DNA of 64,000 nt, taken from positions 257,172-321,171 of the forward strand of contig NW_003314349.1 in the NCBI RefSeq assembly GCF_000143415.4, given 5' to 3'. The notes beneath the pieces are model-generated. The model saw only the letters and a list, made by a program, of their open reading frames with translations, was not told the origin of the DNA and ran no database searches. Of this stretch, positions 10,920-48,010 are shown in pieces. This stretch comes from Selaginella moellendorffii. Taxonomy: Eukaryota; Plantae; Lycopodiophyta. The position numbers and the translations under genes were made by a program. The first letter of the stretch is position 1. Every line of letters begins with the position of its first letter.

Positions 10920-11280
10920 ATGACTGTGTTTGGGTGTCCAAAGCAATGCTCAGTCTTCATTTCTTCCCTCCACTCAATCCATGCAAGAACCACTATCTTC
11001 AAGCCCCATCTCACTGTCAACCATCTCCTCTTTTGGCTGCGTGGTAGGCTGCCTCAAATAAGCAGAGTAAGTGATTGTCTCCAGAACAGTGAGCTTTCCC
11101 AGCAAAACATGCTCTTGATTTACATAAGCATCTGATAGAAAGCTTCAGAATCACTAAATCAAATGTTTATACACACAGCAGTCCCATGCCTCATGTTTGT
11201 CTGGAAATTCCCATTGGATCCTTCTCGCCCCACAATCTACCTGTGATGAACGACAATGCAAGAATCTTAGTCTCAAACAC
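10920..11280 (-). pseudogene. Inverted degenerate ABCG exon 2-3 fragment
   Basis: Same fragment as 1635-1980. Contains the uninterrupted MULE target ccatCTCCTCTTttggc. Confidence 0.8.
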
Positions 11281-11418
11281 GTGCTCAATCTTTAGAGAGT
11301 CTTGCGAAGTCACTGAAAGACTCGTTGACTTTGGAGATGGGTTGCGTAAAGTATATATATCCCACCACACAAACTTTTGTTTGAATTGATGCGAAAACGA
11401 ATATAGCGCTCAAGAATC

Positions 11419-13476: not shown

Positions 13477-14014
13477 CGTCTTACCAGTGAGCCTCTCCTA
13501 CTTTGCTTGTGATACGTTCGCTAGTAGGACATCGTTTGCAAACTTACCTTGTTCTTAACACTCCATCTCCTCTTCAGCCATCACAAATATCCTGTTTTAG
13601 TGCACGAAAATGTCTTCACAGATGCCCAGTGGATTTCTGTCCTATTTGTCCAGATCACTTTAGGAGAAACATGGTCAGTTACGATGCTGGGAGTTACATT
13701 GCTGACCTTGGAAGTCGACTTTGAAGCAAATCACTTCATTGTCTTATTGGTGAGCACTCTTTTGATACGATCACTATTTATAATTTATAATGAATTTTGT
13801 GGTAGCAGGATTTTACTACCTGTAGTATTTGTACTTCATTTTACTATTAATTACTATAAGTTAATATATTTGTATGCTTCAATTAGTTTTATTGTCTATA
13901 AATATGGTAAAGATGGTTTGTTTTGTCAAGCTTAATAAATTCTAAGGGACTTATCACCTAAGTGGGCTTGATTATGAAGTCTTAGTCTTTTGTTGACCTT
14001 AGAGATATTTGAAG

Positions 14015-19215: not shown

Positions 19216-19559
19216 AATTAAAAGTATGGCTTCATGAGCTTGTCATTCACGTTTCACTTGTCATATTTATAAATGATCTTCTGGCATCTAGTAAGTGTCA
19301 CGCAAATTGTCTTCAACCTTCATGTAACTTTTGTGTGGAGCAGAATTCAAATGCAAACTGAGAACTGAAACACAATATGCTTTTGTAAGAAATGCATTTG
19401 TAAGCGCTTTGATTGCTTCGTAATTATCTTTTGAGTTAGCCAAATGCCTTAGTCATGTAATTAGTGACACCCATGAATGGGATTCCCACTGATGCTCTGC
19501 ACAGAAAATAATCAAATAAATCAGACATAATAATTACTTCTCTAAATAACTAAAAGATG

Positions 19560-20074: not shown

Positions 20075-21582
20075 ATGGCTTCTCAAGGTACGTCGTCTCC
20101 AAAGATCCATGTCCTCGCATTTCCCGTCAAAGGCCAGGGACACATCACTCCGATGATGCATCTCTGTAAAAAGATCGCCGCTCGAGATGGATTCACCGTC
20201 TCGTTCGTCAATGTCGACAGCCTCCACGACGAGATGATCAAGCACTGGAGAGCTCCACCCAATACGGACCTCCGCCTCGTCTCAATCCCACTCTCCTGGA
20301 AGATCCCACACGGCCTGGATGCTCACACTCTCACTCACTTGGGTGAGTTCTTCAAGACCACCACCGAGATGATCCCAGCTCTCGAGCACCTCGTCTCCAA
20401 ACTCTCTCTCGAGATCTCGCCGGTCCGCTGCATCATCTCGGACTACTTCTTCTTCTGGACCCAGGACGTTGCTGATAAGTTCGGGATTCCAAGGATTGTT
20501 CTGTGGCCTGGATCCACTGCCTGGACCACGATTGAGTATCACATACCCGAGCTCATCGCCGGAGGCCATGTCTTTCCCAGCTTGACCGAAGGTAACTCCA
20601 ATTTAAGTTTAAGTTCTGCCAATGGCAGTCACGTACGCCTCGAAACTTTGCAGCGAAGAAGCTTGTCGCGGATGAATCTGTAGTGGGCATTATCAAGGGA
20701 CTGGGACCTCTTCATCAAGCCGACGTACCTCTCTACTTGCAAGCTGACGATCATCTCTGGGCGGAGTACTCCGTGCAGCGAGTCCCCTACATCCGCAAGG
20801 CCTCCTGCGTGCTCGTCAACTCCTTTTACGATCTGGAGCCGGAAGCTTCCGACTTCATGGCCGCCGAGCTCCGGAAAGGTGGCACGGAGTTTCTCTCTGT
20901 CGGTCCCATGTTTCTCCTGGACGAGCAGACGTCCGAGATCGGACCAACCAACGTGGTGCTCAGGAACGAGGACGGCGAGTGCCTGCGGTGGCTCGACAAG
21001 CAGGAAAAGGCTTCCGTTCTCTACATATCTTTTGGCAGCATCGCGGTCGTGACTGTCGAACAGTTTGAGGAGCTTGCGGTGGGACTGGAAGCAATCGGAA
21101 AGCCTTTCTTGTGGGTGTTACGGCCAGAACTTCTCATTGGAAATCCGGTAGAGAAGTATAAGGAATTCTGCGAACGTACCTCCAAGCAGGGATTTACTGT
21201 GTCCTGGGCACCGCAGCTACGAGTTCTGAAACACCCCTCCATCGCTGCGCACCTCAGTCACTGCGGCTGGAACTCGGTGCTGGAAAGTATCAGCAATGGA
21301 GTGCCTCTCATGTGTTGGCCTTGGGGAGCTGAGCAAAACACCAACGCAAAGCTGGTTATACACGACTGGAAGATTGGAGCTGGATTTGCAAGAGGGGCGA
21401 ATGGACTGATCGGCAGAGGCGACATCGAAAAGACGCTGCGGGAGGTGATGGATGGGGAAAGAGGGAAGCAGATGAAAGACACGGTTGAGGTGCTGAAGTG
21501 CAAGGCAAGGAAAGCTGTGGAGAGTGGTGGTCGATCCGCTGCGAGCTTGGATGATTTTCTTAAAGGCCTCAGCAGCCAGTGA
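20075..21582 (+). CDS. UDP-glycosyltransferase (GT family 1), 2 exons (20075-20591, 20654-21582)
   Basis: Close paralog of 2137-3629. PSPG box WAPQ...HCGWNSVLES...CWPWGAEQ, 62-bp intron. Confidence 0.95.
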
Positions 21583-27624: not shown

Positions 27625-27735
27625 GACTGCGTTTTGGTGTCCAAAGCAATGCTCAGTCTTCATTTCTTCCCTCCACTCAATCCATGCGAGAACCACTATC
27701 TCCAAGCCCCATCTCACTGTCAACCATCTCCTCTT
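27625..27735 (-). pseudogene. Inverted ABCG fragment, left part (continues at 47753-48010 after the transposon)
   Basis: Matches 10920-11032 up to the target site. The remainder resumes at 47753. Confidence 0.85.
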
Positions 27736-27796
27736 GAGCGTGGACCATACTTGAGCTCACGAGCTGAAGAGTTGAGCTCACGAGTTGAGCTCAATT
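27736..27796 (+). repeat. Left TIR
   Basis: GAGCGTGGACCATACTTGAG matches the right end at 14/20. Inner block 27769-27796 is the 28/28 reverse complement of 47708-47735. Three TGAGCTCA palindromes. Confidence 0.9.
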
Positions 27797-28369: not shown

Positions 28370-31300
28370 CTAATTAGCTCCAAAAGTTTTCTGCAACTCG
28401 GCAATAGTAAGGCTTGCTTGGTGTATATGAATATCCACTTTAGGATCCTGGTGCAAGATGTTGATGAAGATGTAGTACATATGCTTGCAAGGAGCATATG
28501 CCTTCCCATGTTCCTTGCGCTTCGTAAAGTCTGGACATGTGCAAGAAGGAAAGTCTTGAATGGCAATTGTGTACTCTCCACCTTCTGTTTTGATTGTGTA
28601 CTCCTTTGCGAGTGCAGTGATGTATTTCGTGGAGAGAATCTCACACTCAAGTGTTTGAGCCAAGTTTATTTTACCTTGCTTCTGCTTGGAGACGGTACCA
28701 ATAAATTTAACTGCCTTACCTTTTCGTGCTGGCCTTTTGTGCATCTCTGTAGGAATAGTCCTGGTTCTGTCACTCATATCTCCAACTCTTCTCTCAAGAT
28801 TGAAACCAGATTTCTCAAGGTTTTCAATCTCATCCGAGCTGAGCGCAACCCCATTAGCAACCGGCCATTCTTTAGGTACTGCATCAGGTTTAGTCACTAT
28901 AGTGTCTTCAAGCCGCTTTGTATGGTTGACATCAGAGTTGCAGCAATATAACCAACACCATCTTGAAAATCCTGCTTGCTTTCGTTCCCCATGGAAACAT
29001 GGGGCTAGAACAGAAGCAGACTTATCACCACGGATCCAAGCCCAACACTTGCCCCTTGGAAGCATCCCCACACACCTTACATTTGATTTCGCTGGCACTC
29101 GACGGATTGCCCATTGCTTCGGCTCCACACTACGATAAGCAATTTCAACCTGCTGTGATGCACTTTCTTCATCAGCCACTTGAGGTGGTTCGGTTCTGGG
29201 GCGATGTCTTGGAGCAGAATGATACTCAACATCAGGCCTGTAAGAGCTTTTTGCTCCAAGATCCGTGCCAACATCTTCACCAGCAAAGGAAAATCGACGC
29301 TTTGAGCGGACGGTCTTCATATCACCAACAGAAGCCCGAGGAGTGTACTCCATAGATGTGCCGCGGACCACTTCCTCCACTGCAGTTGCCATTGTTCGTG
29401 CTGGTGGAGTCACTTTCTTCTTCATTCGATCGTGTAACATCTCAACCGAAGGTCCTGTTCCCATGTATCTTCTTTCCTCAAATGCCAAGGCTTTTGAAGA
29501 TTGCTCTACAGCGCGTATCAAATCTGATAGACATGCTTCATATAGACTCATCTTCCCTTTCCCTGCCTCAGAGGAACGTCAGCTCCAATGTTTACTCTCT
29601 GAGAGATTCACAGTTGGGGTGTATGCAAGATCCTCAAGTGGTTGATCCTTATAAAAAGATGATATTAAAAAGCAAAAAAAAGAGAGGAAAAAAAGAAAAA
29701 CCAACCTGAAAAGAGTGATGTCCCCATTGGAACATTCTAACTTCCCACCACCCCAACCACGACTCAAGTTGTGGTAGACAACTTACGTCAATATGGCCAT
29801 CTTCACGCCACCACATTCAGATCTCGTTTGCTTTTGCCTCATGCTCTTCTTCAGAAGGTGCAGCCTGCCATTGTTTGCACAACTCCTTAAATGCTAATTG
29901 GAAATTTGGCTTGATAAGGTGGCAGTGTTGGTTTAGGCTCTGAGCCCAATGGAACTCACAAGTCCTCTCACGACCTTCTAGGGGTAGACCATTCCCAAAG
30001 ACTGCCCGGACACCATTCCAATTAGCCCCAGCCCCATCTGCCATGAAACTGCGAAAGTTGGCAGGCTTACCAGTCCGCTTCAATACAATGTCGGAGAGGG
30101 ACTTCCAAAATATTTCTTGAGCCATCTGGTCTTGTACTTTAAACTCTGCCATTGCAATTGTCAAGTTACAATGTAGCCTGTGAAAAGTGCAATGTTTAAA
30201 ACCATTTTAAGATAATGAGAAAAAAAACTACCTCGGATCATACACATGAGCTCCCATGGTTGTCCAACCCGCCACCCGCTCCATATGGTCAAAATGTACC
30301 TATGCATTAGCAAGGTCACTCGACCCAGACATATCCATTCGGGAAACAAGATCCACACCAAAGGCAGGGCCCATGGTAGACATTTTGAAAACGAAGGGGC
30401 GCTCTTGCTCCCTAACGACTTGATCTAGAAATAAACTCCCATAGATAAACTCATAGGGACAAGTCTGTTTTAGTTCAAGGATTGAGTCGATTTTTTATTG
30501 GAGTTTCCCCTCTCGAGATTCACACATCCAAGACTTTATCCTAAATAAAACAAAATGTAAGAGAGATATTATTAAAGAGTATGTAATAATATTTTCATAC
30601 CTCCTGAGGCTAGTTGCAGGTTGCACATGTCGTAGTAACTCCCGCAAGTTAGCCTCATCCAGTTGAGTATTCTTGTAGTCCGGATCAAGTAATGTATTTG
30701 CAATAAAATCCTTGAGCACTGTCTTTTGAACATGCTTCGGAGTTGCAAATGAGTTTCTCACAGTCTCTATCTGCACTGCATCTTTGAAATGGTTGACTGA
30801 ACTCCTTTGTATCCCTTCTTGCATTGGATGTGTGTGCGTGCTAATATGTACTGTAGCTCTACCAACCTCTCCATCCCGTGGAAGAAAATAGTACATCTTG
30901 GCCCCGCAGATGGCACGACACAATGGAGCATTCTTGCAAAACCAACACTTGAATCCAACACCAATAGTGTCACAGAGGGGAGGATTGGTTGCAGATCCTT
31001 CAAAAAATATGGAGTTTTTACCGCGCTCTTGATTGCATGCTTTATTCACACAATCCAAATAACCACCACAATGAACCATGGACACTGTGCCTTCGAAATG
31101 CTGGAAATGTGTGGTCTTGATCTTGCACCAGTTGTGGACATCCTGCTTCGTCTCCATCCCCTTTCGTTTTGAGCTGACAAGAGGTGGTAGTTCAAAGAAG
31201 ATATTGCCATTGTATGTAGATGGGAGCTCGCTAACAGGCCTATGCAGAAAGGAACGAATATTGATAGAGAGGCGGGAAAACTGGAAAGTGTTGCAAACAG

Positions 31301-31580
31301 CTTGGAATATCAGTGAAGTTGGAGTTTGGAAATTCTTGGCTCGCACTGGACTAACATCTCCACTAGAACTAAAAGAGGAAGAAATGATGACGACCGACTC
31401 TTGCTTCACATTCACTTTAGCAGGATCACAACCTCGCACTTTGATTGGAGATCCAAAAACTCGAATCTCTTTCGACTTGGAATGTTGCAAATCCCAATGT
31501 TGTCCACCTTCACCTACACCCGAAAGAAGAAACTCCGATCTTTCAACTACACCAATGTTGTTGCGAATCACAGCTTCCAA
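28370..31580 (-). pseudogene. MULE-type DDE transposase (GCM-like Zn domain, MULE catalytic domain, SWIM finger); exons 31580-30601, 30540-30232, 30177-29706, 29647-28370; ~1010 aa with 4 in-frame stops
   Basis: Phase-consistent splicing. GCM-like W..HCGGYLDC...C...CWFC...C...HISTHTHP. D1 VHFDHMERVAGWTT, D2 FMADGAGANWNGVRAVF, CxxH TCEFHW, WLGWW..R, E in PTVNLSESKH, SWIM CTCPDF...CKH. Stops at 30495, 30300, 29817 and 29579. Start codon uncertain. Confidence 0.88.
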
Positions 31581-32529
31581 TGAAATAGAACCGAGAGAAA
31601 GATCGAAACGTCGGCAAAGAAAACTTTATGAAATAAGACTTTGGGAGAAAGAAAGCGGTGGGTGATCTTGGTAATGCAAAAGAAAACCCTCCATTTTGTT
31701 GCCTTTAGGTTTTGGAACTCTGAACTTTTATAACGAAATGTCACCTCACATGTGCTATGCCATTATGTGAAAAGATAGGGGGATTTTATTCTAGGATCTA
31801 ACATCGAATAATGTTGTTATAATAAATTCTGTATGAAGTATATAGGACTATGTTGTACCATATTAAAAGTCTATATACATTGAATTAAAAAACATACTCA
31901 AATTTATTATATGCACTAACTTTTGGTAGAATGGAAAGAAATATCACCTCAAGCATGTGCCATAATATGAAAGATAGGAATGATTTTATTCTAGGATCTA
32001 CCATCAACCAATTGTTGCCAAATAAATTAAATATTGTACATATTTTCAGTACTTCATTAAAGCTAGAAATCATCACATTCTTCTGAACTCATTTAAATAT
32101 ATTCCATCTTTGTACTACCATCTATCACCTATAGTAAATTATCTATATACATTGCTTTGGAAATAACACCTTATGATTTAATAATCTTATATTTTCTAAC
32201 AGTTTCGTATTGTGATCAATTCAACACATGTGTCTGTGACATTATTTCACATTATGACATAGTCATATTAGAGCACACCTCCATTATTAAATTACAATTC
32301 AAAAGGACTTTGTCACGTGATCAAATCTAGGGCGGAATAGAAATTGTACAGTGCTAGATTTATTATTTATTGTACAGTGAAGATTTACTGCATCCACGAT
32401 GAATGGCTGTGATGAAAGTTAGGTTAGGGTTAGGGCAGCTGCCGGCGTTAGGGTTTTACAGAAAGTAGAGCGGGAGATTGGGAGTGACTGCGGGAACAGA
32501 ATGCCGCCAAGAGTAAGTTTTTTCTCCTC

Positions 32530-33370
32530 CTCCACTCCCTCTCCTCCCCGCCCAGCGCCGCCGCGCCCAGCGCCCCTGCACCCACGCCACGCCAAGCACC
32601 GCCACGCCCAGCACTACTGCGCCCACACCACGCCACGCTCAGCACCGCCACTGCCCAGGGCTGCCAAGCACCGCCCATTGCCATGCCACGCCCAGCGCAG
32701 CGCTGCCTAGGTCCACCGCTGCCCAGCACCGCCGCTGCCATGCCGCCGCTGCCTAGGTCCGCCGCTGCCCAGCACCGCCGCTGCCATGCCACCGCTGCCG
32801 TTCTGCCGCTGCCCAGCATCGCCCACACCATGCCATGCCACGCCAGTGCTGCGCTACCTAGGGCCACCGCTGCTGCCAAGTGCCCAGGCCGGGCATTTGG
32901 CTGGGCACTCCGCCTGGGCCGGCCATGGCAGGCCGGTACGCCGGCAAACCAGTGCCAGAGCAAACTGCCCGTGCCAAGTCCGCGCAGGCCGGCCAAGGTG
33001 CTTGGCCGGCAAAAGCGCCAAGTGCTTGTGCCAAATGCCCACGCTGGGCATTTGGCACGAGCCAGCCAAGTCCAAGCGCCAAGGCCAACCGCCCGCGAGC
33101 CAGCCTTGGAGCTTGAGGTGGGCCGGTTCGCCCGGGCATTTGGCCCGAGCCGGCCTTGGCACTTGGAGGCGGACCGGCGCCCGCACCAAGTGCCAAGGCC
33201 AACCGCCCATGAGCCGGCCTTGGCGCTTGGAGGTGGGCCGGTTCGCCAGCGAACCGGCCCGCCTCCAAGCGCCAAGGCAAGGTTCTCGGGCAGTTGGCCT
33301 TGGCATGGGCCGGCCAAGGTGCTTGGGGGCGTCCCAGTTCGCCGGCGAACCAGCGCCTGCACTGAGCCCA
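32530..33370. repeat. GC-rich repetitive/palindromic tract inside the 914-bp first intron; ~56-bp-stem hairpin at 33191-33305
   Basis: Arms tgccaaggccaaccgccc...gggccggttcgc and gcgaaccggccc...gttggccttggca are separated by 2 nt. Repeated GCCAAG/CTTGGC and GGCC motifs. Confidence 0.85.
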
Positions 33371-33582
33371 CGCCCTGTTCCCCTCTTATGCATTTATAAT
33401 TTATAATGTTTTTTTTTTTTTTTCAGAAACGGAAGCAACTACAAAAGGAGAGGGATGTTGGATCAAAGAGATGACATGAGGAAGATGAGATCCAAGACGA
33501 CAATCAAGTTGACATTTAGATAGAGATTTCCACAGCGACAACTCTACCATCTTCCCAACCAGATAGCTCCAATCCACATGCA

Positions 33583-33830
33583 CCCCCACCATTGCCATCG
33601 ATGCCACCACCACCATTACCACCGCCACCACCTTCACCACCATTACCACCACCGCCACCTTTACCTTCATCACCACCATTACCACCACTGTCATCACCAC
33701 CATTACCATCACCACCATTACCACCACCACTGTCATCACCACCATTACCACCACCACCGCCACCATCATCACCACCACCAACGCAACCATTGTCATCACT
33801 ACCATTGCTGCCACAACCACAAATGCCACT
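33583..33830 (+). repeat. (CCA)n-type low-complexity tract encoding poly-proline in exon 2
   Basis: ccaccattacca/ccaccacc repeats, in frame with the downstream ParB-like region. Confidence 0.85.
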
Positions 33831-36800
33831 ACTCTTAACATATTCACAAAATATGGCAGAAACGGAGCAGTGCCCAAGTGCGCTTGATGCCGGTGTTGGG
33901 CCAGAGTCAGGGGCTAGATCTGATAATGGTGCTACTGGAGGTGTAGCTGAAGCTGAAAGAGAAGTGGAGCTACCTGAACACATTGTCGACAAGCGCTTCC
34001 AAGAGACAGTTTTGAGAACTAAAGAGAAGGCCATTCACACGACTCTAAAGTCTCTCAAGTGGGAAGGCCCGGGGCATATGATCTGAGAAATCCCACTATG
34101 TCGATTCACTCAGACAAGCATCGTTCGGTCTGCTTCACCGCACTTCGTCAACATGGACATCTATAGTTTGTACAAACAAAATGGCCTTGGGACAAGCATA
34201 GGTATGTTCCTTGTTTCGGTCTTCAAGCCAGGAACGACAAATACCCTCTCGGTGTCACTGGAAATCGAGAGGGATTGGGATGACATTTGGAAAATGAAGT
34301 CCCGCGAATTTGACATCAAGCTTATGAGCCATCCTGAGACTCAACAATTTGTGGGGAAAATGTTCTACATTATCAATGGGAATCATCGCTGGTGCGCGTG
34401 GATGAAGTGCATTCGAGAATGCTTCCGAGATGATCCTGTCTATCACATCAATGTTCTGGTTGGACATGTACACGCGAGAGGATCTCTAGATGTGGCAAGG
34501 CTTGTGATAGCTTGCCACAAAATTAATGCGTAAGTACCTCTCCCTCTTCACTTTTAACAATTTGTGTTTTGCAGGCTGGGACAGTTTGCAGTGCAGAAAC
34601 AAAGCCTAGTACATGATATCGAGTAGATCCGGTTTCTTGCCAATCTCGACGAGGATGCAGTCCGCAGCCACTATGGTGATGATTTAGCATCACTTATTCG
34701 GCATCAACGAAGTCGTCAGGATGCCAATAGATGGTACAAGAATCCAGTGGCTTTTATGACAGCTGTGTGGAGTAAGGTATGTTCTTTCAAGTATACTTCT
34801 TATCATAGAATGTTTATGTTGTCTTCAGCCATTGGTGAAGGTTAAGCAAGATGCATATGCACAGTCGCATCGAGCTGAAAATGATCAAGAACTCTTAGAG
34901 CATTTAGCTGCAATTGACAAGAAAATCAACAACACAAAGAAGACAAAGGTAAAAAAATTACTTAGTGTGGCTGACCCTCGACGCCCAAAGGAGTGGTTCG
35001 ATATTATAACAGAGATTGCTTGTCATGAAAGTAAGTATTGTTTGTGTTTACATGAAGGTTCTCACAAAAGTTATTTTTTAGTGGGCAAGACTCCATATGA
35101 GATTATTTACAACATCTCAAAGTCAAAGCTTACATATGAGGAATAGATACACATTCTGAACGACCTCAATAGCAGACTCAGGGAAGGAGAAAAAGGTTTG
35201 GACAGTATGATGGAGACTGTGATGAGGAGGACCGTCTACATTTCACAAACTGTATATGAAGGGGAGATGTTTCTAGTGCCTTTCATAGGGGATGATCCTG
35301 AGCAACTTCCATTTAAGGACTTCGTCACCATTGAGCTTACAAAACTCGGAGAGGACTGGCTGCCAAAGAAGGCCACAAGCACGACTCCATTTGATAAACA
35401 ACTTGGCCAACCTTACTTCATGCGTCGAGCGGCTTTCAGGTAACATACAATTTCTCAACTATACTCAATTGTTTATATTCTATTATAGGTATCTCCAATA
35501 TAGAGGCGTTCCTCTCGAAACACCGGTATGCACACGCCTCCTGAGGCATGGTGTGAGAGATGGAGGCATGTACCCGACAACAATGAAGTTTCTAGCAGCA
35601 ATAAAGCGCGCTTGTCCTTGGGAATTGGAGATGCCAGATTATGAACCAACCCACCATGAGGCTGCAAGAGGCAACAATGATGACGAAGAGAATGTCGACC
35701 CTGTTGGTGCCAATGGCGAGCAAAGTGAAGATGGTGGCGAGAACGAGATTCTTCGAGACGAAGTCGAGCAAGAGAACCAGAACGTCCAAGAAGTTCTACC
35801 TCGACGAAAGCGTGCAAATCCATATCTGGAGGAATTAGTCAACAGTGATGATGATCGTCCAAGACGTCCCCGTAACCGAGGAACTTCTCGAGGTATATTT
35901 CTTTTAATTCTCTCATTTTCTTAGTTCCTCAAAATGGTTGCAGCAAAAACTGTCGGGAGTAACTTCATTCCAGCTCGTCTTGATGCTCGAGAAGAGGACT
36001 TGGAGGAACTTACATCTACCACACGCCACATGACGGTATGTAAATTTTTCTTAAGTTCACATCTTATCTTTGTCTTCTCCCCCTAGATTCGCCCTGTATC
36101 TCCAGTGGTATTCCGTGGTGAAGTTGGGATCTTTATTGGCTCTTATAGTTCATTGATGGCATTTTTTGAGGAAGATGCTGAGAATATGGCTATCCGGCAA
36201 AAGTGGGAGCACTTTTGTCAGAAGATCCATAGGCGACCGCTCAAGAGCACAAACTTCATGCTCTTTGATATGCCAGATGGTCTTCCAGACGCTAATGGTG
36301 ATGTCCCAAGCTGGAACAACCTAACTAAAGACCACTTGAAGGATGCATTCCTTTTGGCAGCAATTCTCCTTCACACAACTGGTCAAGTAGCCTTCATTCT
36401 CCCGAATGACCCCCATTGGATGTCCTGCCTTATGAGGTATGCAACTCGAGTCAACTTCAAGAGGTTCTCTTCCGGATGCATCATGGATAGTGTTGGGGTC
36501 GAGACCAAAGGTGTCCTAGGCATGCCAGAGAAGGTAAGAAATCATTTTCTGTTTTGGTTGTCTCTAAAGTTTTATTATTCAGGTTATGATGTGGACCTAC
36601 CATGTGTTCTGCAGAAAAGAAAATGACGGTTTTCGTGATAGCGAGCGTGCTGCAAGGGTTTTGCCAGGGTATGATAGCTTTACTGACATCATACCAAATC
36701 TCATAGACGACGACATCCGCAACACATTGTCTGGGTATCGGTTCCGATCTCCATCGGTGATGCATGTCCTACTTGAGCTTTATTGCCCAACTAGGGGTGT

Positions 36801-37370
36801 TGTCATCAATTGCACAGCAGGTAGTGGTTCGATGGTCGAAGCAGCACGTGACTCTGGTAGATCGGTGTTTGCGATTGAAGAATATAAGTTCTTCAAACGC
36901 CATCTTCGAGGTTTTCGTCCTTCTCTATCAGTTGCTTCTAGAAGGTAATTTATGATGTTTTAAAAACTTATAAATAATATATATTTAATTTTCTAGAAGT
37001 CTTCCTAGGTATGTATGGCACATCATATGCAATGTGTAAATTGAGGAGTGGTATGAAAAATCTATTTATTAATGATACATTAAAAGACAATTGAATGCAT
37101 CCACTTGCAAAGAAAGATGTGTCACATGTCAATGTGATAATGATTGTGACACTGATAGTGTCAGTGCAGCAGATAGCGACAGTGATAGTGTCAGTGACAG
37201 AGACAGTGTCAGTGTCAGAGATGACAAAGTTACAGTGTCAATCTGTCAAATTTCATAATTACTAGTATTATCAGTTTATTATCTATAGGTAATACAATTT
37301 TGTTAATAAAAAAAAGGCGAGGGGCGGATGAATAATATCATAGTGTAAGAATTATTAGTGGCTGGAATTT

Positions 37371-37919
37371 TCAGTAGGATGGCCTAAAAATACCATATTC
37401 AGCACTTGTGGATGTAGTATCTACTAACGGAATATTGTTCCTCACCATGAAATGATAATGATTGTGTGTTCTTAACTCTTTCTTGATTTTCTTATACATC
37501 CATTTATACACACCTTCCACACTAGTTCTTGGGCAGTTGTGACAGTGTTCTAGAAAAGTTTCTAAACCCATACAGCCTTCCGTTTTATCTAAATAAAAGT
37601 AGCAGATGGGACACTGGAGATAATATGTGTTCATTCTTTCAAAAGTTTCAACCATATCAGGAGCAAGATCTTGAAGAAACATCTGGCATCGCTCTTGAAG
37701 CACATGAGGCAATCCATCTTTAGTAGCAACATCTAAAACATTATCTGGAAGAGGGATCTCTTGTTCAGTCACACTTGGGGTTACAAAAGAAAAAGCCTCA
37801 CAACAATTGATGTATGGAGGGAAGGGTGGAATGTTAGTAGAAGTTGGAGACGGAGGTGGAGACTCATATGAAATGCATGGGGGCCAAGTGCGAGTAGCAA
37901 TAGCATTTTCCCTAGCCAT
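37371..37919 (-). CDS. Small transposon cargo protein (182 aa) with zf-XS-like zinc finger
   Basis: Intact ATG-to-stop ORF containing YLQCPICYFYLDKTEGCMGLETFLEHCHNC...YKWMYKKIKKEL. Its conserved paralog next door supports coding status. Confidence 0.65.
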   Translation of the reverse strand: MARENAIATRTWPPCISYESPPPSPTSTNIPPFPPYINCCEAFSFVTPSVTEQEIPLPDNVLDVATKDGLPHVLQERCQMFLQDLAPDMVETFERMNTYYLQCPICYFYLDKTEGCMGLETFLEHCHNCPRTSVEGVYKWMYKKIKKELRTHNHYHFMVRNNIPLVDTTSTSAEYGIFRPSY

Positions 37920-38177: not shown

Positions 38178-38732
38178 TCACATTACATTAAAAGGTGGCC
38201 TAAATATCCCATATTCAGCCCTTACTGATGCAGTGTTCACCAATAGAATATTGTTCTCCACCATGAAATCATAATAGCTGTGTGTTTTTAATTCTTTCTT
38301 GATTTTTTTATACATCCACGCGTGCACACCTTCCAAACCCGCTTTTGGGCATTTGCGACAATGCTCAATAAAATTTACCAAACCCATGCAACCATCTGTC
38401 TTGTTTAAATAAAAGTTGCATATAGGACACTGAAGATAATATGTATCTACATTAAGCTCCCCTGCCATATCTGGAGCAAGATCTTGAAGAAAATATTGAC
38501 ATCACTCTTGAAGCATTGGAGGCAATCCAACTTTTTTAACAACATCATAAGAAAGGAGTTCTTGTTCAGTTGCACTCGAGGTCGCAAATGGAAGAGCCTC
38601 ACAACAGCCCTCAAAATGAAAAAGAAGATTGTTGCGTAGAGGTGAAGGTGGATTATTGGTTGAGATTGGAGATGGAGGTGGAGACTTATATGAGAGGCTT
38701 TCGGGACCAAAAGTAAACTTCTTCCTAACCAT
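38178..38732 (-). pseudogene. Paralog of 37371-37919 with one in-frame TGA (38502-38504)
   Basis: LQE*CQYFLQDLAPDM aligns to LQERCQMFLQDLAPDM (CGA in the paralog). Retains CPIC...EHC...GVHAW...KKEL. Confidence 0.75.
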
Positions 38733-38912
38733 TGCAACACACAAGAAGAATTAAACTTCCTAGCAATAAGAATTCTCTCATTAATATACTATATTTCAAT
38801 ATCGGGAATGATGTTTTATTATGACATGACACTATATTGAATGATAATTGTCAGTCTTAGTAATTACAACCTACTATAAGAGACAAGTGGCTATAGGGTT
38901 TCAGAAGCTAAA

Positions 38913-39462
38913 TGTGAGACACAAAATCCCTAGGCCGAGCCGGAAGGGCGCCACGTGGTAGTGGCCGAAGCGAGAGCCAAACGAGCGTAACACGTTTGGA
39001 CCAAAAGCTCCGACTTGAAAAGTCAAGAGCGGGAGTGGAACTCCCAACGAAGTGCTCAAGGAACGAGCACGAAACGAGCCATAGGCGAGGCTCCAAAAAG
39101 GGACCCAAAAGGACCAACACATGACACGTGGAAGTGTCTAAGATGGAGTCCGATATGGAGTCCGAGATGGACCCGAAGTGGAGTCCGAGATGGAGTCTGA
39201 GATGGAGTCCGAGATGGACCCGAGATGGAGTCCGAGATGGACCCGAGAAGGAGTCCGAGATGGAGTCCGAGATGGACCCGAGAAGGAGTCCGAGATGGAG
39301 TCCGAGATGGACCCGAGATGGAGTCCGAGGTGGAGTCCGAGGTGGACCCGAGGTGGACCCGAAATGGAGTCCGAGATGGAGTCCGAGATGGACCCGAGAT
39401 GGAGTCCGAGATGGAGTCCGAGATGGACCCGAGATGGAGTCCGAAGTCGAGACCGAGACCGG

Positions 39463-39506
<44 letters not shown>

Positions 39507-40614
39507 TCGGGACTGAGACCGAGCCCGAGGCCGAGGCCGAGACCGAGCCCGAGCCCGAGCCCGAGTCCGAGTCCGAGTCCGAGTCCGAGTCCGAGTCTGA
39601 GTCCGAGTTCGAGTTTGAGAGGGTGAAAGCCCAAAGCGTTCGTCTCCCAGACCCTGGGGGGTTTGGTGAGCTCCAAAAGTATAGTAGGGGGAGGACTGCA
39701 GTGGAGCCAGTTTGGCCAGGAAAGGCCAGTTTGGCCCAGGAAGGCCGGACCCAGTGTTGGGTGAGGAGCTGCCCACTGGGAAGTCCAAGACTAGAGTGAA
39801 CACGGACCGACAAGCGGGGTAGCTTGGTGAAGTGTTCAAGAGCCGGCTCTAGTTCCCCCGGGAGATCGACTGGCCGATGCTCCCAGTCCAAGTGTGGGTG
39901 GCACTACCTACTTGGATACCAGGTGTGGCTCAACGGAACCTCGCTCTAAGCCCATGGCTAGAGCACCTAAAGGCGATAGGTGGGGAGAGTACCCAGGTGG
40001 CTCGCGTAAGGCCACGGTGTTCCGAAATGTTGTCCCAAAGGCCCAGACTGTGGAAAGGAAGAGGAGCAGTCCTCTGGAGCAGTGACCAAGGACGCAGTCG
40101 TGTGGTGAGGAAGTCCCAGAGGACCGTGGGACTTAGTGGTCGGGCCTGTGGGCCTCGATCCAGTGGCAGTGTTGGCAAACACGGCCAAGGGCAGAAAGGG
40201 ACTTAGTGGGGACTGACAGAGGGATATTGGGGAAGGCTAATCCCCATGTCAGTGGGCATCCTAAGGATGCTAAGGAGTGGATCTGGGATGATCACTCATG
40301 GATGGATGGCCCAGTCTTTGAGTGACAGGACTGGGATGCAGGTGGTGTCAGACCATAGGTGTGACCAAGGTGAATGGGCATGGCCTTAGCGTAACGGGCC
40401 GATACGTCGGTGGTACCTTGGGGTGTCGATCATGGGATCGGACACGGGGAGCACTTGGACCAAGTGCTAAGGTTGAGTGGCATGGATGCCATTCTCGGGG
40501 CTGGCAAGCCCCAAGTCCTGAGTTGGACTTATGGAGGTTGTGAATGAGACTCCTCCAAGTGGTCGGAGGTGTGGTTAAGTGACTAAAGTAAAATGGAAAA
40601 ATTAGTCGCTTACA
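38913..40614 (+). repeat. 5' LTR (1702 bp) with 11-12-bp (GGAGTCCGAGAT/GGACCCGAGAT) and 6-bp (CCGAGN) tandem arrays at ~39140-39615
   Basis: Direct repeat of 44722-46458. Confidence 0.95.
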
Positions 40615-43600
40615 ACTTGGTATCGGAGCTGTTCCTTAGTCCGACTTTTATTGGTGCTCAAGTATATCACCACTAGTGTTGGCATCGGAAGGTCCGAGGA
40701 GTGGGCCTATCTTTGAGGAGTAGCAAGTCGGGAAGACATGGCTCTCCATTACAGTTCATGTGTGAACTTGTAGACAAGGTGGTGGATAGAAAAGGGCCAA
40801 TAATGGAACGACTTTGGGATCTTGGGAACAGTGCAATGTTTTCCTCATTGAGTTGAGGATGTGATCCGGATGAGCATTTGCCTCAGCAAATTGGCTAAGG
40901 TAGTTGTGGTAAACAACTATAGTTGGGATCATGGGAAAGATAGAGACTCCAAAACAATAAAGGAGTCACAAGATTGTCCTCGTATAGTTGAGGTTGGTGC
41001 TCATGAATGTGAGACCAGAGGTAATGACCGTGGGAGGTCAAGTATGGATGAGGACACGAGTCCTCGAAATGGTAGCCGGGGCTACCTCTAATAAATGCTG
41101 GAACAACCCAAGGAGTTGGGGGTGTATTAAGTGGATGAGTTGGTATTCTCATCACATGGACAAGTAGTCCTAAGGGGCAAAGGTTGCCCCCAGAGAAAAA
41201 AATCAAGTGTCAGAGTAACACTTGTGAAAATAGTCCTTTTGAGTAGGACAGGAATGCAAGAAGTGTATTCCAGTGAGCTAGTGCCTCACAAGTAGGACCT
41301 TACGGGTCTGTGGATTAACCAAGTCCAAAACTGCTGGATGACTCAAGTAGAGTCAAGGGATGGTCCTAAAAGGACCGATGGAAGCATTTGGACTGAGGTG
41401 TGTTGTACCCCACAAAGGATGGGGGGGGGATCATAGGATCCAAGGATGAGAACAGAGGGTATCTCATCGATGGCAAAATGTGCCATGCTAAAGTCGTGGG
41501 AAAAGTGTTCCCAAAAAGAAAACAACTTTGACACAAAGTTGTGTGTGACCTCTATGATGCAGTGCTAACAGATGGTTGGCATGAGAAAGAGTGGTATTGG
41601 TCTTGGCAAAGACTTAGACACAAAGAAAAAGTGTCATAGAGGTAGGCTCGTGGAGCCGATGGTGTGAAGACACCAAATATGCCAAGGTGTGATACCTTGA
41701 GGCTAGGTTGGTGGGTTCATGAGAACCCCTTGCCAAGGGAATCCCAATAGAAATGGGAATGGCATAGCCTAAGTTGCAGAGCATGCAGTTGGAGTGTGGT
41801 GACCCAGATAATGATGGAGGTGTGGAAGCACCAGCAATGAGTTGTAGGACTTGACAACTACAAGGCAACTAAGCAAGAGGTGCAAAATAATTGGTTAAAC
41901 GGGTAGAAGGTAGCTACCCAAGCCTTCTTAATGGCATAGGGAAGTTGGATATACCCTTACGGGGGATAATTGTTTATGTTGCGATATAGTAAGTCAATGT
42001 CATAAAAGGAAATACTCATTGTCAAGGAAGCCGTCATTGGGACACCCGAACACTCTAGAACACCAGGAGGTGGTGTTTGATGTCGCGAGGGCAGTAGATA
42101 AGGCCCAAGGGACTAAGTCCCTAGCGAATGATGGATAGTAGGTGCTATCCAAATGTCCAAGGTGGCAGAGACAGGAGAAGACTGTCTACTCGAATTGGAC
42201 AAAGCCAAAAGTGGAATTTTGGCAAGGCTAGCGATGGGCATACAAAGGCCCGTAAGCAACAACGTAATCCCGGTGTGTGGGATTATAAGGTGAGCATACC
42301 TGGATTGAGGAACCACTCCCTAGGCTATCGAGTAGGTTCATCCCTAAGAATACTTGCTAAGGCATGATAGAAAGTGCAAAGCTATCCTCCTGGTCTGGAG
42401 GAGAATGACCGAAGGAAAGGTGTGAAGCCAAAAGCAAAAAGTAAGGGGATAGAACCGAACTATAGGAATCAAAGGGCATAACCAAAGTGGTTATGCCAGT
42501 TGGGAGTGGAGAATCAAGTGGGGGCTCGAGGGTGTTGCCGCTAGCAACCGTGATGCCATGGAGAGTCTAAAATATGGAATTGTCCATGTTAGACTATATG
42601 GTAATTGGAAAGCTTGCCAAAAAGGGGGGGCCTTAGCAAGCTAAGGGACAGAGTTCCTTCAAATTTCCCAAAGAGGATTCTAGGTAGCTTAGTACCTAGA
42701 AAGGCCAAGTGTAAATGGTTCAAGGAACGCGCGAAATCAGAGTGGCGCAGCAGAAGCGTGGTCTTGAAGCTTGCCATGAGGCAAGGCTATCAAGGTTAGG
42801 GAAGTAGTTCCCGAGTGTTCAAAGAAAGGGCTTTGAACGAAAGTCGATGGTCAAGGACTTTCACGCTTATGCATGAACCATGTTACAGTGGTCGGAGGAC
42901 TTGCCAAGCAAGACTGGCAAGTCGGGGGAACAAATACCCTGTTGAAGGTGATAACTTCAAAAAGGGTGGGCCATGGGGCCAAGCATGGAGGAGTCCATGC
43001 ATGATCACAGACTTGTCAAGTGAGAGGACTTGGCAATGTGGAGGAACTAGGTTCCTAAGCTGTGATCTGAAGTGCGCTTTAAATATAGGTTGGTGCACCG
43101 GTGTGGGGAGTCATGCCAGGCATCCGGTGTGATGCCGTCCGTAGATGCATATACGGAGGTTGGGTTTGAGTCCCGACCCTCTAGTGCTTGGGTTCGAGTC
43201 CCAAATCACTAGGGCGTGGTGATGGTTTGGAATATGAGGACACTCATATTTCGGTGGTCATGGACTCTCAGTGGGGAGACTGGTTTGGGCACACCGCCAA
43301 GCGAGGGATGCCTCGGAGTCGTGATGCACGGTTAGATTGCTTAGTGTGAAAGCTCGGCATATCTAACTTGAACACTTTGGTGCACGTGGCACCAAGGACG
43401 TGGTGAGTGAGATGGGGACACCTAATCTCAGTTGCTATGGACCCTTGGCCGGAAGGGCTGGCTTGGGCGCACCGCCAAGTGTGGGGGATGCCCCCGGGGT
43501 CGTAGTTAACAAGTTAAAGGTCTGGAAGACCTAGTACCTATTGGCAAACCTGTTAAGGTGCCGAGGTGAGATCACTAGGTGATCTTGTGGCTAAATAAGG

Positions 43601-44721
43601 ACAAGGTCCTTGTTTGGGCTAAGGAATAAGGTTCCTAGTTCAAAGTGTTGATTTGAACTATTGATGATGGTGTGGCTTGGTCAAGGTGACCAAGTGGGAA
43701 AAGCACCTTAGGGAAATGAGCTATGTCATTGCGATGGCATAGTGTGTCCAAGGAAAGTAGTCTCTAAAGAGACCCATGGGAGGGTCACAAAGTTGGGCCG
43801 TGGATAGAGCCCACTGCAGAAGATGCTAAAGAGACTTACTAGGGGTGAACACCCTAGTCTTGGCAAAGCAGAGCCTTTGCTATGGAATCAAAAGAATACC
43901 TCAAGGAGGGAGGTAGAGATTCAGTGTTGCTTGGTGCAACAATCAACGGATAGGAGCAAAAGATGAGTGGCCAAGATAGGGCCGTGGAATCCCTTGGAAG
44001 GAATCCAAGTGGCAAAGTTCGGCGAGGAACACTAATGTGTTGGACGCTAACAAATTGCGGGAAAGGAAGCGAGTTTCCAAGGATGGATTCCAAATTGCTC
44101 CGGTTTGGCGAAAGGGGAAGCTCCGAGGGAGGGAGCGGTAAAGTAGCCAAATGATAGGGCCATGGACAACCCTAGCACAAAGTATGATAACTGGAACTTA
44201 GTGCCCAAGGTGGCACGAAATAGAAGAGAGGATGATGGTGCCCTCAAGTAGAGAACTTCCTAGGATGAGGGAGTGGAGTTGCACAATATGTGCAATGCAA
44301 GGTGTTGGAGACACCTAGGGAATTGACTTCCAGAAGTCAAAGAGTAAAAGTTCCAAGGTGCAAACGTTCAATCAATGGAAATTGAGACTACTCGAGAAGG
44401 AGTAGTGGTATTGACTTAGAAAAGGGTCTCTAAAAGGTTTAGCAAGAACTAAATCAATAAAAGGAGAGAACCACTGCATGTGGTCTAATCAGTCTCTAAG
44501 TTGGAGAGACTACCCTCCTTAGAGGAAGGGCAAGGCATGGAGAGCCTATGGTGTCAAACCATTGACGAGTATGGAGAAGGCATGGTGAGCCTTCAATGTC
44601 AAACCATTGACGAATATTGGCTAGGTGCCAAGGATGGAAATAGTAACACATGCGGGTGTTACTTTATAAAATGGTTTACCGTTCGATGAGGACATCGAAC
44701 TTCGTCTATGGGTGGTGGAGT

Positions 44722-45306
44722 TGTGAGACACAAAATCCCTAGGCCGAGCCGGAAGGGCGCCACGTGGTAGTGGCCGAAGCGAGAGCCAAACGAGCGTAAC
44801 ACGTTTGGACCAAAAGCTCCGACTTGAAAAGTCAAGAGTGGGAGTGGAACTCCCAACGAAGTGCTCAAGGAACGAGCACGAAACGAGCCATAGGCGAGGC
44901 TCCAAAAAGGGACCCAAAAGGACCAACACATGACACATGGAAGTGTCTAAGATGGAGTCCGATATGGAGTCCGAGATGGACCCGAAGTGGAGTCCGAGAT
45001 GGAGTCTGAGATGGAGTCCGAGATGGACCCGAGATGGAGTCCGAGATGGACCCGAGAAGGAGTCCGAGATGGAGTCCGAGATGGACCCGAGAAGGAGTCC
45101 GAGATGGAGTCCGAGATGGACCCGAGAAGGAGTCCGAGATGGAGTCCGAGATGGACCCGAGATGGAGTCCGAGGTGGAGTCCGAGGTGGACCCGAGGTGG
45201 ACCCGAAATGGAGTCCGAGATGGAGTCCGAGATGGACCCGAGATGGAGTCCGAGATGGAGTCCGAGATGGACCCGAGATGGAGTCCGAAGTCGAGACCGA
45301 GACCGG

Positions 45307-45338
<32 letters not shown>

Positions 45339-46458
45339 TCGGGACTGAGACTGAGCCCGAGGCCGAGGCCGAGACCGAGCCCGAGCCCGAGCCCGAGTCC
45401 GAGTCCGAGTCCGAGTCCGAGTCCGAGTCCAAGTCCGAGTCCGAGTCCGAGTTCGAGTCTGAGAGGGTGAAAGCCCAAAGCGTTCGTCTCCCAGACCCTG
45501 GGGGGTTTGGTGAGCTCCAAAAGTATAGTAGGGGGAGGACTGCAGTGGAGCCAGTTTGGCCAGGAAAGGCCAGTTTGGCCCAGGAAGGCCGGACCCAGTG
45601 TTGGGTGAGGAGCTGCCCACTGGGAAGTCCAAGACTAGAGTGAACACGGACCAACAAGCGGGGTAGCTTGGTGAAGTGTTCAAGAGCCGGCTCTAGTTCC
45701 CCCGGGAGATCGACTGGCCGATGCTCCCAGTCCAAGTGTGGGTGGCACTACCTACTTGGATACCAGGTGTGGCTCAACGGAACCTCGCTCTAAGCCCATG
45801 GCTAGAGCACCTAAAGGCGATAGGTGGGGAGAGTACCCAGGTGGCTCGCGTAAGGCCACGGTGTTCCGAAATGTTGTCCCAAAGGCCCAGACTGTGGAAA
45901 GGAAGAGGAGCAGTCCTCTGGAGCAGTGACCAAGGACGCAGTCGTGTGGTGAGGAAGTCCCAAAGGACCGTGGGACTTAGTGGTCGGGCCTGTGGGCCTC
46001 GATCCAGTGGCAGTGTTGGCAAACACGGCCAAGGGCAGAAAGGGACTTAGTGGGGACTGACAGAGGGATATTGGGGAAGGCTAATCCCCATGTCAGTGGG
46101 CATCCTAAGGATGCTAAGGAGTGGATCTGGGATGATCACTCATGGATGGATGGCCCAGTCTTTGAGTGACAGAACTGGGATGCAAGTGGTGTCAGACCAT
46201 AGGTGTGACCAAGGTGAATGGGCATGGCCTTAACGTAACGGGCCGATACGTCGGTGGTACCTTGGGGTGTCGATCATGGGATCGGACACGGGGAGCACTT
46301 GGACCAAGTGCTAAGGTTGAGTGGCATGGATGCCATTCTCGGGGCTGGCAAGCCCCAAGTCCTGAGTTGGACTTATGGAGGTTGTGAATGAGACTCCTCC
46401 AAGTGGTCGGAGGTGTGGTTAAGTGACTAAAGTAAAATGGAAAAATTAGTCGCTTACA
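44722..46458 (+). repeat. 3' LTR (1737 bp)
   Basis: Direct repeat of 38913-40614 with few substitutions and a different tandem-unit count. Confidence 0.95.
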
Positions 46459-46972: not shown

Positions 46973-47290
46973 CTCTGTAAACACTAAAGAATGAACGAGT
47001 GAATCAGTGTTTCAAATTATTTATATATTTTTGGTCAATTGTTGAAATGTTAAAATGTTGAAATGTACAATAGAAATTTTAGGTTCATTCGAACTTCAAT
47101 ATTCCCATTTTATTTGGGACCAATAAAGCCCAAAAATTTCTATGGGTTCAGATGAACTTCTAATTCTAGAAATTGTATAAATTGCATTAGAAAGATTCAA
47201 AAAATAGAAATCTCTCTGAACCATTGATACTTAAATTCATAAATTTCAAGTTCACCAAAGAATAACATTTTTCTGACTTAATATTTCCTA

Positions 47291-47704
47291 TACTATTCAA
47301 ACCCAAGGACGCTTAACCCCAAATATCCCAAGACCCTTAACCGATTGGAAAAGGGGGTGCACTCTTGTTCATGGGCCCTTTCCCTCTATATTTGAACCCC
47401 ATGGATCGTCTCTCGAGTCGTTCCTTTTGGTTGCTTACAATCCACCACGCTTCCCTGCAAGTTCACGCCCTCATGAACGGAAGCTAAGAGCCGTAGCTCT
47501 CCCGAGAGCCCTGCTTTCTTGACACCCTACCCTCCCGGGAGGTCACCCAGCCCAGTACTATTCAAACCCAAGGACGCTTAACCCCAAATATCCCAAGACC
47601 CTTAACCGATTGGAAAAGGGGGTGCATTCTTGTTCATGGGCCCTTTCCCTCTATATTTAAACCCCATGGATTGTCTCTCAAGTCATTCCCTTTGGTTGCT
47701 TACA
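47291..47704 (-). mobile_element. Cassandra-like TRIM (two partial LTRs plus short internal segment) next to the right TIR
   Basis: LTR copies at 47291-47439 and ~47532-47704, the second with 5S-like ggaggtcacccagcccagtacta. PPT-like gggaagcgtggtgga on the minus strand. Confidence 0.8.
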
Positions 47705-47707
47705 CTG

Positions 47708-47752
47708 AATTGAGCTCAACTCGTGAGCTCAACTCAACTTTGGACCATCCCC
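47708..47752 (-). repeat. Right TIR
   Basis: Reverse complement reads GGGGATGGTCCAAAGTTGAGTTGAGCTCACGAGTTGAGCTCAATT. Confidence 0.9.
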
Positions 47753-48010
47753 CTCCTCTTTTGGCTGCGTGGTAGGCTGCCTCAAATAAGCAGAGTAAGT
47801 GATTGTCTCCAGAACAGTGAGCTTTCCCAGCAAAACATGCTCTTGATTTACATAAGCATCTGATAGAAAGCTTGAGAATCACTAAATCAAATGTTTATAC
47901 ACACCACAGTCCCATGCCTCATGTTTGTCTGGAGATTCCCATTGGATCCTTCTCGCCCCACAATCTACCTGTGATGAACGACAATGCAAGAATCTTAGTC
48001 TCAAACACGT
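47753..48010 (-). pseudogene. Inverted ABCG fragment, right part
   Basis: Continues 27625-27735 and matches 11025-11285. Confidence 0.85.

Follow-up and report, generated by a model that had tools for sequence, protein, structure and literature searches.

A Decayed Gene of a Selaginella moellendorffii DNA Transposon Joining a Putative ParB-like Domain to a Predicted Methyltransferase Fold

Introduction

Does a transposon of a vascular plant encode a protein that works on the DNA of the element itself, and is this protein a DNA methyltransferase (MTase)? The question is raised by a gene at positions 32501–36948 (+ strand) of a 64,000-nt stretch of the Selaginella moellendorffii genome (GCF_000143415.4, contig NW_003314349.1, positions 257,172–321,171 of the forward strand). 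This whole stretch is called the window below, and coordinates with no other label are window positions. In the first-pass annotation, the gene was read as an intron-containing fusion of a ParB-like domain with a prokaryote-type N4C/N6A DNA MTase, encoded by a plant DNA transposon. The analysis presented here indicates that it is most probably the decayed accessory gene of a cut-and-paste transposon family that occurs in lycophytes and liverworts and carries two genes between inverted ends. With equally good confidence, the gene of this family is described as intron-bearing, about 860–1060 codons long and oriented divergently to a SWIM-finger, Mutator/Zisupton-like transposase gene, in elements accompanied by an 8-bp target-site duplication.

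Results

A DNA Transposon with Two Divergent Genes

The gene lies inside a transposon insertion, which was proven by an empty paralogous site. The insertion is 20,017 bp long (27736–47752, + strand) and is bordered on the left (27728–27735) and on the right (47753–47760) by the target-site duplication CTCCTCTT. The empty site, at about 11018–11040, reads ...CAACCAT CTCCTCTT TTGGCTG... and contains the 8-mer once, in comparison with both sides of the insert; the flanks of the insertion align to this uninterrupted paralogue with an 8-bp overlap. A unit located 5' of a UDP-glycosyltransferase gene, itself duplicated, is the interrupted sequence: the copy at about 11.0 kb is intact, and the one carrying the insertion is split at 27735/47753. 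The insertion ends with imperfect terminal inverted repeats (GAGCGTGGACC... and ...GGTCCATCCCC) and carries subterminal GAGTTGAGCTCACGAGTTGAGCTCAATT repeats as well as a 28-nt, 100% complementary subterminal inverted repeat (27769–27796 and 47708–47735).

These termini resemble those of an S. moellendorffii element of about 8.85 kb, which has terminal inverted repeats and occurs in at least five copies with 99.4–99.9% identity. Two S. moellendorffii element loci were used for comparison, L001, representing a second Selaginella subfamily, and L004, in which the copy shows an 8-bp duplication. The near-identical copies keep the reading frame of the accessory gene open, and the intact ones were probably active recently.

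The remains of a transposase-like gene were detected by tblastx on the minus strand (28382–31706), collinear with positions 2335–5707 of L001 at 50–68% amino acid identity. The accessory gene is collinear as well, its part at 34135–36915 corresponding to 7531–10436 of L001. The collinearity therefore indicates that the divergent gene pair is conserved between the two elements at roughly 50–68% protein identity, and the same divergent pair of transposase-like and accessory genes was found in the liverwort Riccia sorocarpa (locus L007). The transposase-like protein possesses an N-terminal Cys/His-rich domain, an FMAD...C/DxxH core, a signature recognised by eye only, and a C-terminal SWIM-type CxC...CxH finger. 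The Pfam matches to SWIM (16.5–18.0 bits, with E = 0.006 for the window and 0.002 for the other match) were below the 19.6-bit threshold. Duplications of 8 bp are made by Zisupton elements (PMC12730594). The bryophyte transposon superfamily Lanisha, which has CA..TG ends and 2–5-bp duplications, was considered and rejected.

The remainder of the 20-kb insertion consists of later nested insertions. A retrotransposon-like one of about 7.5 kb (38912–46458, + strand) is situated outside the gene; its direct repeats of about 1.46 kb (38913–40376 and 44722–46220) share 99% identity, which suggests a young insertion of the long-terminal-repeat type. The L001 element is flanked by inversely oriented sequences that are 80–84% identical to this nested element. 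Two paralogous open reading frames (ORFs) on the minus strand (37371–37919 and 38178–38468), located between the nested element and the pseudogene, code for Cys/His-rich products with a YYLQCPIC...HC..CP pattern and no Pfam match.

A Broken Copy of an Intron-Bearing Gene

The splice model of the first-pass annotation, with nine exons read in phase to about 1061 amino acids, was reproduced exactly. The exons on the + strand (32501–32512, 33427–34529, 34575–34776, 34829–35030, 35082–35439, 35489–35892, 35944–36035, 36087–36533 and 36583–36948) join to 3183 nt, i.e., 1061 codons followed by TAA, and all eight introns are of the GT-AG type, seven of them being 45–52 nt long and one 914 nt. In the three-frame translation of the 33.4–37.0-kb region, the + strand showed a chain of open segments, and every motif quoted earlier (IPLCRF, FYIINGNHRWCAW, HKIN, FDMPDG, VINCTAGSGS and AARDSGRSVFAIE) was recovered in its place.

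The proposed domain order of ParB-like domain, helical region, acidic linker and MTase fold was also supported. The 33427–34529 exon encodes a Pro-rich low-complexity part followed by the putative ParB/DGQHR-like domain (34087–34529). The helical middle region and the acidic linker occupy the five exons between 34575 and 36035, delimited by tblastn, the splice model and shared introns. Two MTase-like exons follow. The one at 36087–36533, aligned with phage MTases and supported by fold matches, encodes an N-terminal IGSYxxL helix, strand 4 with the motif IV-like FDMPDG, and PSW, and the one at 36583–36948, recognised from Pfam and protein matches, encodes a degenerate motif X (YRFRSP), motif I (TAGSGS), motif II (...AIE) and ends with TAA.

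This reading frame is interrupted by five internal stop codons: 33472 TGA, 33517 TAG and 34084 TGA in the exon with the ParB-like domain, and 34624 TAG and 35144 TAG in the exons of the middle region. Three of them (34084, 34624 and 35144) fall within homology-supported exons, and the window copy is for this reason a dead pseudogene. It makes no protein, does nothing and is inert. The part of the model with no homology support comprises the remaining two stops, exon 1 (12 nt) and the GC-rich "intron" of 914 nt; the counterpart of this stretch in the intact relatives is a palindrome-bearing spacer located 5' of the gene. Homology support is likewise lacking for the basic "NLS-like" start. The claim of an intron-bearing gene on a plant DNA transposon was itself confirmed by the introns, the target-site duplication and the empty site, with the restriction that this copy is broken by five stops. 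Two tandem TTAGGG units are present at 32420–32436, just 5' of exon 1 of the first-pass model.

Relatives of the gene were sought by an exhaustive HMMER search of 1.84 billion representative proteins with exon 9. Two S. moellendorffii proteins, P0001 and P0002, were identified with E = 2.9e-30 and 1.2e-28, respectively, and a bacterial PF01555 (N6_N4_Mtase) fragment was the third credible relative (E = 6e-4); a match to the 4060-aa protein P0003, a bacterial repeat protein, was discarded as spurious. A word-indexed protein search with the MTase domain gave no matches. In tblastn, P0001 and P0005, the latter being another model of the same gene (LOC9661604), tracked the exon chain of the window, and the MTase-like window exons align to residues 340–627 of P0001 at 32–56% identity. 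Intron positions are common to the window gene and the intact copy in L001. P0005 bears the N-terminal half, including IPLCRL...VR and VVDGNHRLLAW, so the window gene and this Selaginella gene have the architecture of ParB-like and MTase-like parts in common.

A profile of the N-terminal domain revealed 20 further proteins with E ≤ 0.001, comprising Selaginella fragments, one R. sorocarpa protein and environmental or transcript contigs. The C-terminal exon of the Riccia gene is homologous to the window exon (E = 1e-6) and to P0001 (E = 3e-9). On one contig (Logan SRR327455, 2372 bp), the coding sequence of a ParB-like family member is complete (189 aa), and other short ORFs come after it. A prokaryotic or phage origin of the module had also been proposed. 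No prokaryotic or phage donor, or close prokaryotic relative, was found in the protein search, the phage tblastn or the viral-contig scan, and the origin claim was not upheld beyond a weak likeness to stand-alone phage MTases.

The gene encoding P0001/P0005 is a stand-alone, apparently intact copy in S. moellendorffii (GL377567.1, positions 10001–13177 of the locus). Its neighbours encode ribosomal L29, CLE, PH_SMPa, Sina/TRAF, GSHPx and ABC transporter proteins, no transposase homologue was detected within 10 kb, and no palindromes are present. LOC9661604 is a candidate for a domesticated copy.

A Predicted Methyltransferase Fold with an Altered Catalytic Loop

The two C-terminal exons are predicted by modelling to adopt the beta-class, PF01555-type DNA amino-methyltransferase fold. 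The AlphaFold2 (AF2) model of residues 340–627 of P0001, computed with family members only as input, had a predicted template modelling score (pTM) of 0.64 and a predicted local distance difference test (pLDDT) of 70–88 in the core; in this model, the strand VDFVFFD leads into the MPDG loop. Foldseek matched it to CcrM, M.BceJIV, M1.HpyAVI, TTHA0409, MboIIA, rotifer N4CMT, RsrI and PvuII (E from 3e-10 to 1e-7), and VIA-align gave Z = 16–18 over 192–228 residues for beta-class enzymes (16.0 for rotifer N4CMT, 8s9m) versus about 12 for MT-A70 enzymes. The top structural matches were beta-class DNA amino-methyltransferases exclusively, so the structural comparison suggested earlier, applied to the Selaginella homologue P0001, returned the expected Rossmann fold. 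In language-model features of the Atlas, the MTase part was nearest to PF01555 clusters (score 0.96).

The order of motifs agrees with the fold matches and with the beta-class assignment made before. FDMPDG (36264–36281) is located N-terminally to TAGSGS and AIE (about 36810–36880), i.e., motif IV precedes motifs X, I and II. PF01555 was the sole Pfam family matched by the C-terminal domain. Its gathering threshold of 26.7 bits was exceeded by the last exon of the Riccia homologue (31.9 bits), and the Selaginella proteins remained below it (P0001, 13.8 bits; P0002, 20.2 bits). The search of PDB sequences with phmmer and hmmsearch gave nothing significant for the MTase domain, the match to 2zie (E = 0.11) covering motif I only.

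The residues of the S-adenosylmethionine (SAM) pocket and those of the catalytic loop differ in their conservation. Two phage MTases were retrieved with the Riccia exon, and the GxG, the GR and the motif II Glu are invariant between them and the window, Selaginella and Riccia sequences; P(S/T)W following motif IV is common to the plant family and the phage enzymes; the Phe of motif I (FxGxG-like) is replaced by Thr. Motif IV reads DIPY in the two phage MTases, DMPD in the window and P0001, DLPD in the second Selaginella subfamily (L001) and DLSS in Riccia, and in place of HPTQKP, the motif X of the phage enzymes, the plant family has YR(Y/F/H)RSP. The canonical (D/N/S)PP(Y/F/W/H) form of motif IV does not occur in any relative read here, which bears out the earlier warning that a protein with DMPD could be inactive or changed in specificity, and conservation of a canonical motif IV among homologues was not observed. 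The aromatic fourth residue of this motif stacks on the flipped base in enzymes of this type. Motifs such as DMPD, DLPD and DLSS therefore make a normal writer of N6-methyladenine (6mA) or N4-methylcytosine (4mC) doubtful. Fold and SAM pocket look preserved, whereas the catalytic loop looks non-canonical in all members read.

A Putative ParB-like Domain and Palindromes between the Genes

In the alignment of 15 family members, the G-N-H-R residues and an upstream Arg are invariant, and IPLCR...VR is nearly so. Two families were matched by more than one of the 15, both on the DGNHR stretch: TIGR03187 (DGQHR), with E = 0.0033 in three members and far below its cut-off, and phrog_1033 ("ParB-like partition protein"), with E = 0.0069 in five members. 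For two members, the nearest Atlas neighbours were DUF3723 clusters (0.95–0.96), followed by a cluster with ParB_N present in 11% of its members (0.91–0.92); the model of the top-ranked DUF3723 cluster superimposed on ParB_N models with template modelling scores of 0.42–0.61. The phage tblastn and the viral-contig scan were blank for this domain. As judged from these patterns, the N-terminal domain probably belongs to the ParB/Srx superfamily and is DGQHR-like, and by resemblance the DGNHR motif can weakly be taken for a ParB box.

The first-pass annotation went further and suggested a nucleotide-dependent clamp. GERRxRA is the arginine-rich box of the clamp-forming ParB proteins that bind cytidine triphosphate (CTP). 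The family has one Arg in its motif, DGNHR(L/W)xA, which is of the DGQHR/DndB type, and GERRxRA was not encountered; the CTP-clamp idea is not favoured because of the lack of the arginine-rich box.

The "intron 1" of the first-pass annotation corresponds to a GC-rich spacer (32520–33390) between the two divergent genes. It contains five palindromes of 18–23 bp within 400 bp (at 32877, 32917, 32988, 33032 and 33237), a second GTTCGCC-GGCGAAC core and GTTCGCCGGCGAAC at 33337, and it is positionally equivalent to arrays in L001 and Riccia. The L001 array (6061–6716) consists of six or seven GTCGGTTCG(C/T)G(C/T)GCGAACCGAC palindromes and is complemented by one further site of subterminal location; the whole locus contains seven matches to the motif versus 0.38 expected. 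The Riccia array (L007, 7836–8957) has 12–13 copies of TTCCGGCGAGnCTCGCCGGAA. In L001 and Riccia, the palindromes between the genes are 20–23 bp long. The layout is conserved and the sequence changes with the lineage, as expected of sites read by a dimeric protein encoded by the element.

Discussion

With the predicted fold, the synteny, the mobility and the decay of the window copy demonstrated, the weighing concerns what intact members of the family would do. In the proposed mechanism, the intact protein would bind the element-specific 20–23-bp palindromes between the two genes as a dimer, through its ParB-like/helical half, and the bound protein would act on the DNA or chromatin of the element by promoter control, anti-silencing or help in transposition. 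The chance of such dimeric binding and subsequent action in intact members is put just short of even. Hardly less plausible, though a shade further below an even chance, is that the palindromes serve as binding sites of the transposase or as promoter elements and have nothing to do with the ParB-like protein, the target of the accessory protein being elsewhere, e.g., in host chromatin. The arrays do occupy a bidirectional promoter region, and a similar palindrome is subterminal in L001, the usual binding place of a transposase. Palindrome arrays next to a ParB-like gene are, on the other hand, the classical parS arrangement, and the palindromes differ in sequence from one element lineage to the next but are laid out alike. 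The same association has been noted for the ParB-like PAG3 of red-algal Plavaka elements.

Several observations weigh against reading the gene as a ParB-like/MTase-like accessory gene with its own sites on a Mutator/Zisupton-like element. The palindromes are equally attributable to the transposase, as nothing ties them to the ParB-like protein; the subterminal position of one L001 palindrome points the same way, and the exact GTTC..GAAC motif occurs in the window twice, which alone is not above chance. No match to the DDE transposase families of Pfam (MULE, Transposase_mut) was obtained in the window, Selaginella or Riccia ORFs, and the superfamily was left as Mutator/Zisupton-like because the catalytic domain is missed by Pfam. 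The ParB/Srx-like assignment of the first-pass annotation is favoured by the DGNHR pattern and the weak TIGR03187 and phrog_1033 matches, but no significant Pfam or PDB sequence match was obtained for this domain and its AF2 model was of low quality (pLDDT 42). The suggested HMMER comparison with PF01555 likewise gave a divided answer, since the window exon 36583–36948 matched motifs I–III (profile positions 170–217) below the threshold (14.8 bits, E = 0.028) and the Riccia homologue exceeded it.

The MTase-like domain has kept its SAM-binding residues but lost both the motif IV aromatic residue and HPxxKP in motif X. It is considered more likely to be a pseudo-enzyme that binds SAM or DNA, or an enzyme acting on an unusual substrate. 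The chance that it is a standard 6mA/4mC writer is correspondingly put at roughly one in three. The fuller proposal, which follows the first-pass annotation in the marking of the element, with intact members as active N6A/N4C DNA MTases that mark the DNA of the element and are targeted by the ParB-like domain, seems unlikely. It is consistent with the whole beta-class fold predicted by modelling, with the motif I GxG, the GR and the motif II Glu shared invariantly with phage enzymes, with the Asp and Pro of motif IV, kept in Selaginella, and with the tolerance of phage relatives for DIPY; moreover, D[ML]PDG and PxW are kept between lineages at only 32–40% identity in that exon. The fourth residue of motif IV is, however, Asp in Selaginella, the whole motif is DLSS in Riccia, and HPTQKP has given way to YR(Y/F/H)RSP. 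A different reading of the C-terminal domain as an ordinary plant RNA or protein MTase, joined to an N-terminal domain unrelated to ParB, is improbable. The lack of significant Pfam and PDB matches of the ParB-like part is in its favour, but the best structural matches were all DNA N6A/N4C enzymes of the beta class (Z = 16–18 versus 12 for MT-A70), PF01555 was the only Pfam match, and the recurrent weak matches of the N-terminal domain were to DGQHR and ParB-like families alone; as far as the MTase part is concerned, this reading is refuted.

The gene could also be a fragment of host or foreign DNA captured by chance in the manner of Pack-MULEs, with no role in the element. Mutator-like elements often take up gene fragments (PMC6431247), and the nested insertions show that this element gathers foreign DNA. 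Nevertheless, a second Selaginella subfamily (about 50% protein identity) and Riccia both have this gene next to the same transposase and in the same divergent arrangement, intron positions are shared, and intact copies with 99.4–99.9% identity keep the frame open, which makes chance capture extremely improbable. Host-gene origin, contamination and chance capture were all rejected on the grounds of introns, synteny and copy number.

The decayed accessory gene described here is a land-plant variant of a transposon cargo that was previously reported from red algae alone (2025). In Plavaka/Mutator/Zisupton elements of Bostrychia and Chondrus, the cargo includes PAG2, with PF01555 and SET domains, and PAG3, with a ParB-like domain and a 2-oxoglutarate (2OG) oxygenase, adjoined by inverted-repeat arrays (bioRxiv 10.1101/2025.02.11.637652); among published systems, this cargo comes closest to the plant gene. 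Both systems are thus eukaryotic cut-and-paste transposons with PF01555 and ParB-like domains and with repeat arrays by the ParB-like gene. Compared by description, they differ in that the plant domains are fused in one protein with no SET or 2OG part, whereas the red algae have separate genes; the land-plant host, the 8-bp duplications and the non-canonical motif IV are further differences. The literature search gave no paper in which the element is described from a land plant.

Stand-alone beta-class MTases of phages, such as gp43 of Lactobacillus phage Lrm1, share with the plant protein the PF01555 fold, the IV...X-I-II order, the GxG, GR and Glu residues and P(S/T)W. The phage enzymes carry DIPY or DPPY in motif IV and HPTQKP in motif X, where DMPD and YRFRSP stand in the plant protein; the latter is further distinguished by the eight introns of its gene and by a long helical/acidic insert between the domains. 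Many acquisitions of amino-MTases by eukaryotes, some from phage ParB-terminase loci, were described by Iyer et al. 2016 (PMC4738411), and in prokaryotic ParB–MTase fusions, such as those of phages and plasmids, the ParB domain precedes the MTase (PMC4738411). A text search of Iyer et al. 2016 (PMC4738411) revealed no mention of Selaginella and no ParB fusion of a land plant. The beta-class fold is also common to N4CMT of bdelloid rotifers and MpDN4MT1 of Marchantia. In contrast to the transposon gene, those are horizontally acquired host genes; their enzymes keep an SPPY-type motif (TSPPY in Marchantia), 4mC activity has been demonstrated for them, and a ParB-like domain is missing.

METTL14 is an example of a retained MTase fold in which the catalytic residues are substituted and the proposed role is in binding or scaffolding. 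The plant family likewise resembles the MTase domain of the DIRS1 retrotransposon, which has kept the fold with substituted catalytic residues and for which binding or scaffolding was proposed (PMC4738411). Both comparators belong to other MTase clades (PCIF1-like for DIRS1 and MT-A70 for METTL14) and to an RNA context.

Few transposons are considered to carry proteins acting on their own DNA or chromatin, the known cases being VANDAL elements with VANC, fungal KDZ/Plavaka elements with TET/JBP and, putatively, the red-algal elements with PAG proteins; DUF3723, which accompanies fungal Starship elements as a conserved accessory gene, is of a similar kind. Their folds or chemistry are unrelated to those of the plant protein, save for a possible DUF3723 link given as a lead by the language model. 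The Selaginella family would add a land-plant case with a single fusion of ParB-like and PF01555-like parts, a candidate cis-element in the form of the palindrome array, intact near-identical copies and a possible domesticated paralogue in a small sequenced genome. For the search for vascular-plant 6mA/4mC writers, it suggests a cautionary answer, as the fold is present and the catalytic motif is absent.

A bolder and rather doubtful extension would make the family a land-plant ParB/parS-like module, in which the protein loads on element-specific palindromes and brings along a re-purposed MTase fold, with LOC9661604 as its domesticated form. Such a module would shield the element from silencing or organise its DNA. 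If true, eukaryotes would have put the partition and modification toolkit of bacteria to use again at the level of chromatin, and this use would be conserved between liverworts and lycophytes.

Additional Observations

The UDP-glycosyltransferase gene unit (2131–3629 and 20075–21582) belongs to segmental duplications of 96–98% identity, one of which is the empty site; associated repeats lie at 1574, 10861, 19498 and 27564/47746. An ABC-2 transporter fragment is also repeated in the window (about 39–1207, 18118–19317 and 52187–53387). A dispersed repeat of about 170–196 bp occurs at 47268–47439, 47533–47704, 58593–58764, 63107–63302 and 7658–7785. It is up to 94% identical to positions 13552–13746 of another S. 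moellendorffii locus (L002) and may be a miniature inverted-repeat transposable element. The region 14330–15376 is a complex tandem array of interleaved 53-, 76- and 82-nt units. An ORF for a Copia-type reverse transcriptase (RVT_2, E = 3e-54) is located on the minus strand at 6035–7537, and the kilobase between 61001 and 62000 is extremely AT-rich, with a GC content of 0.16.

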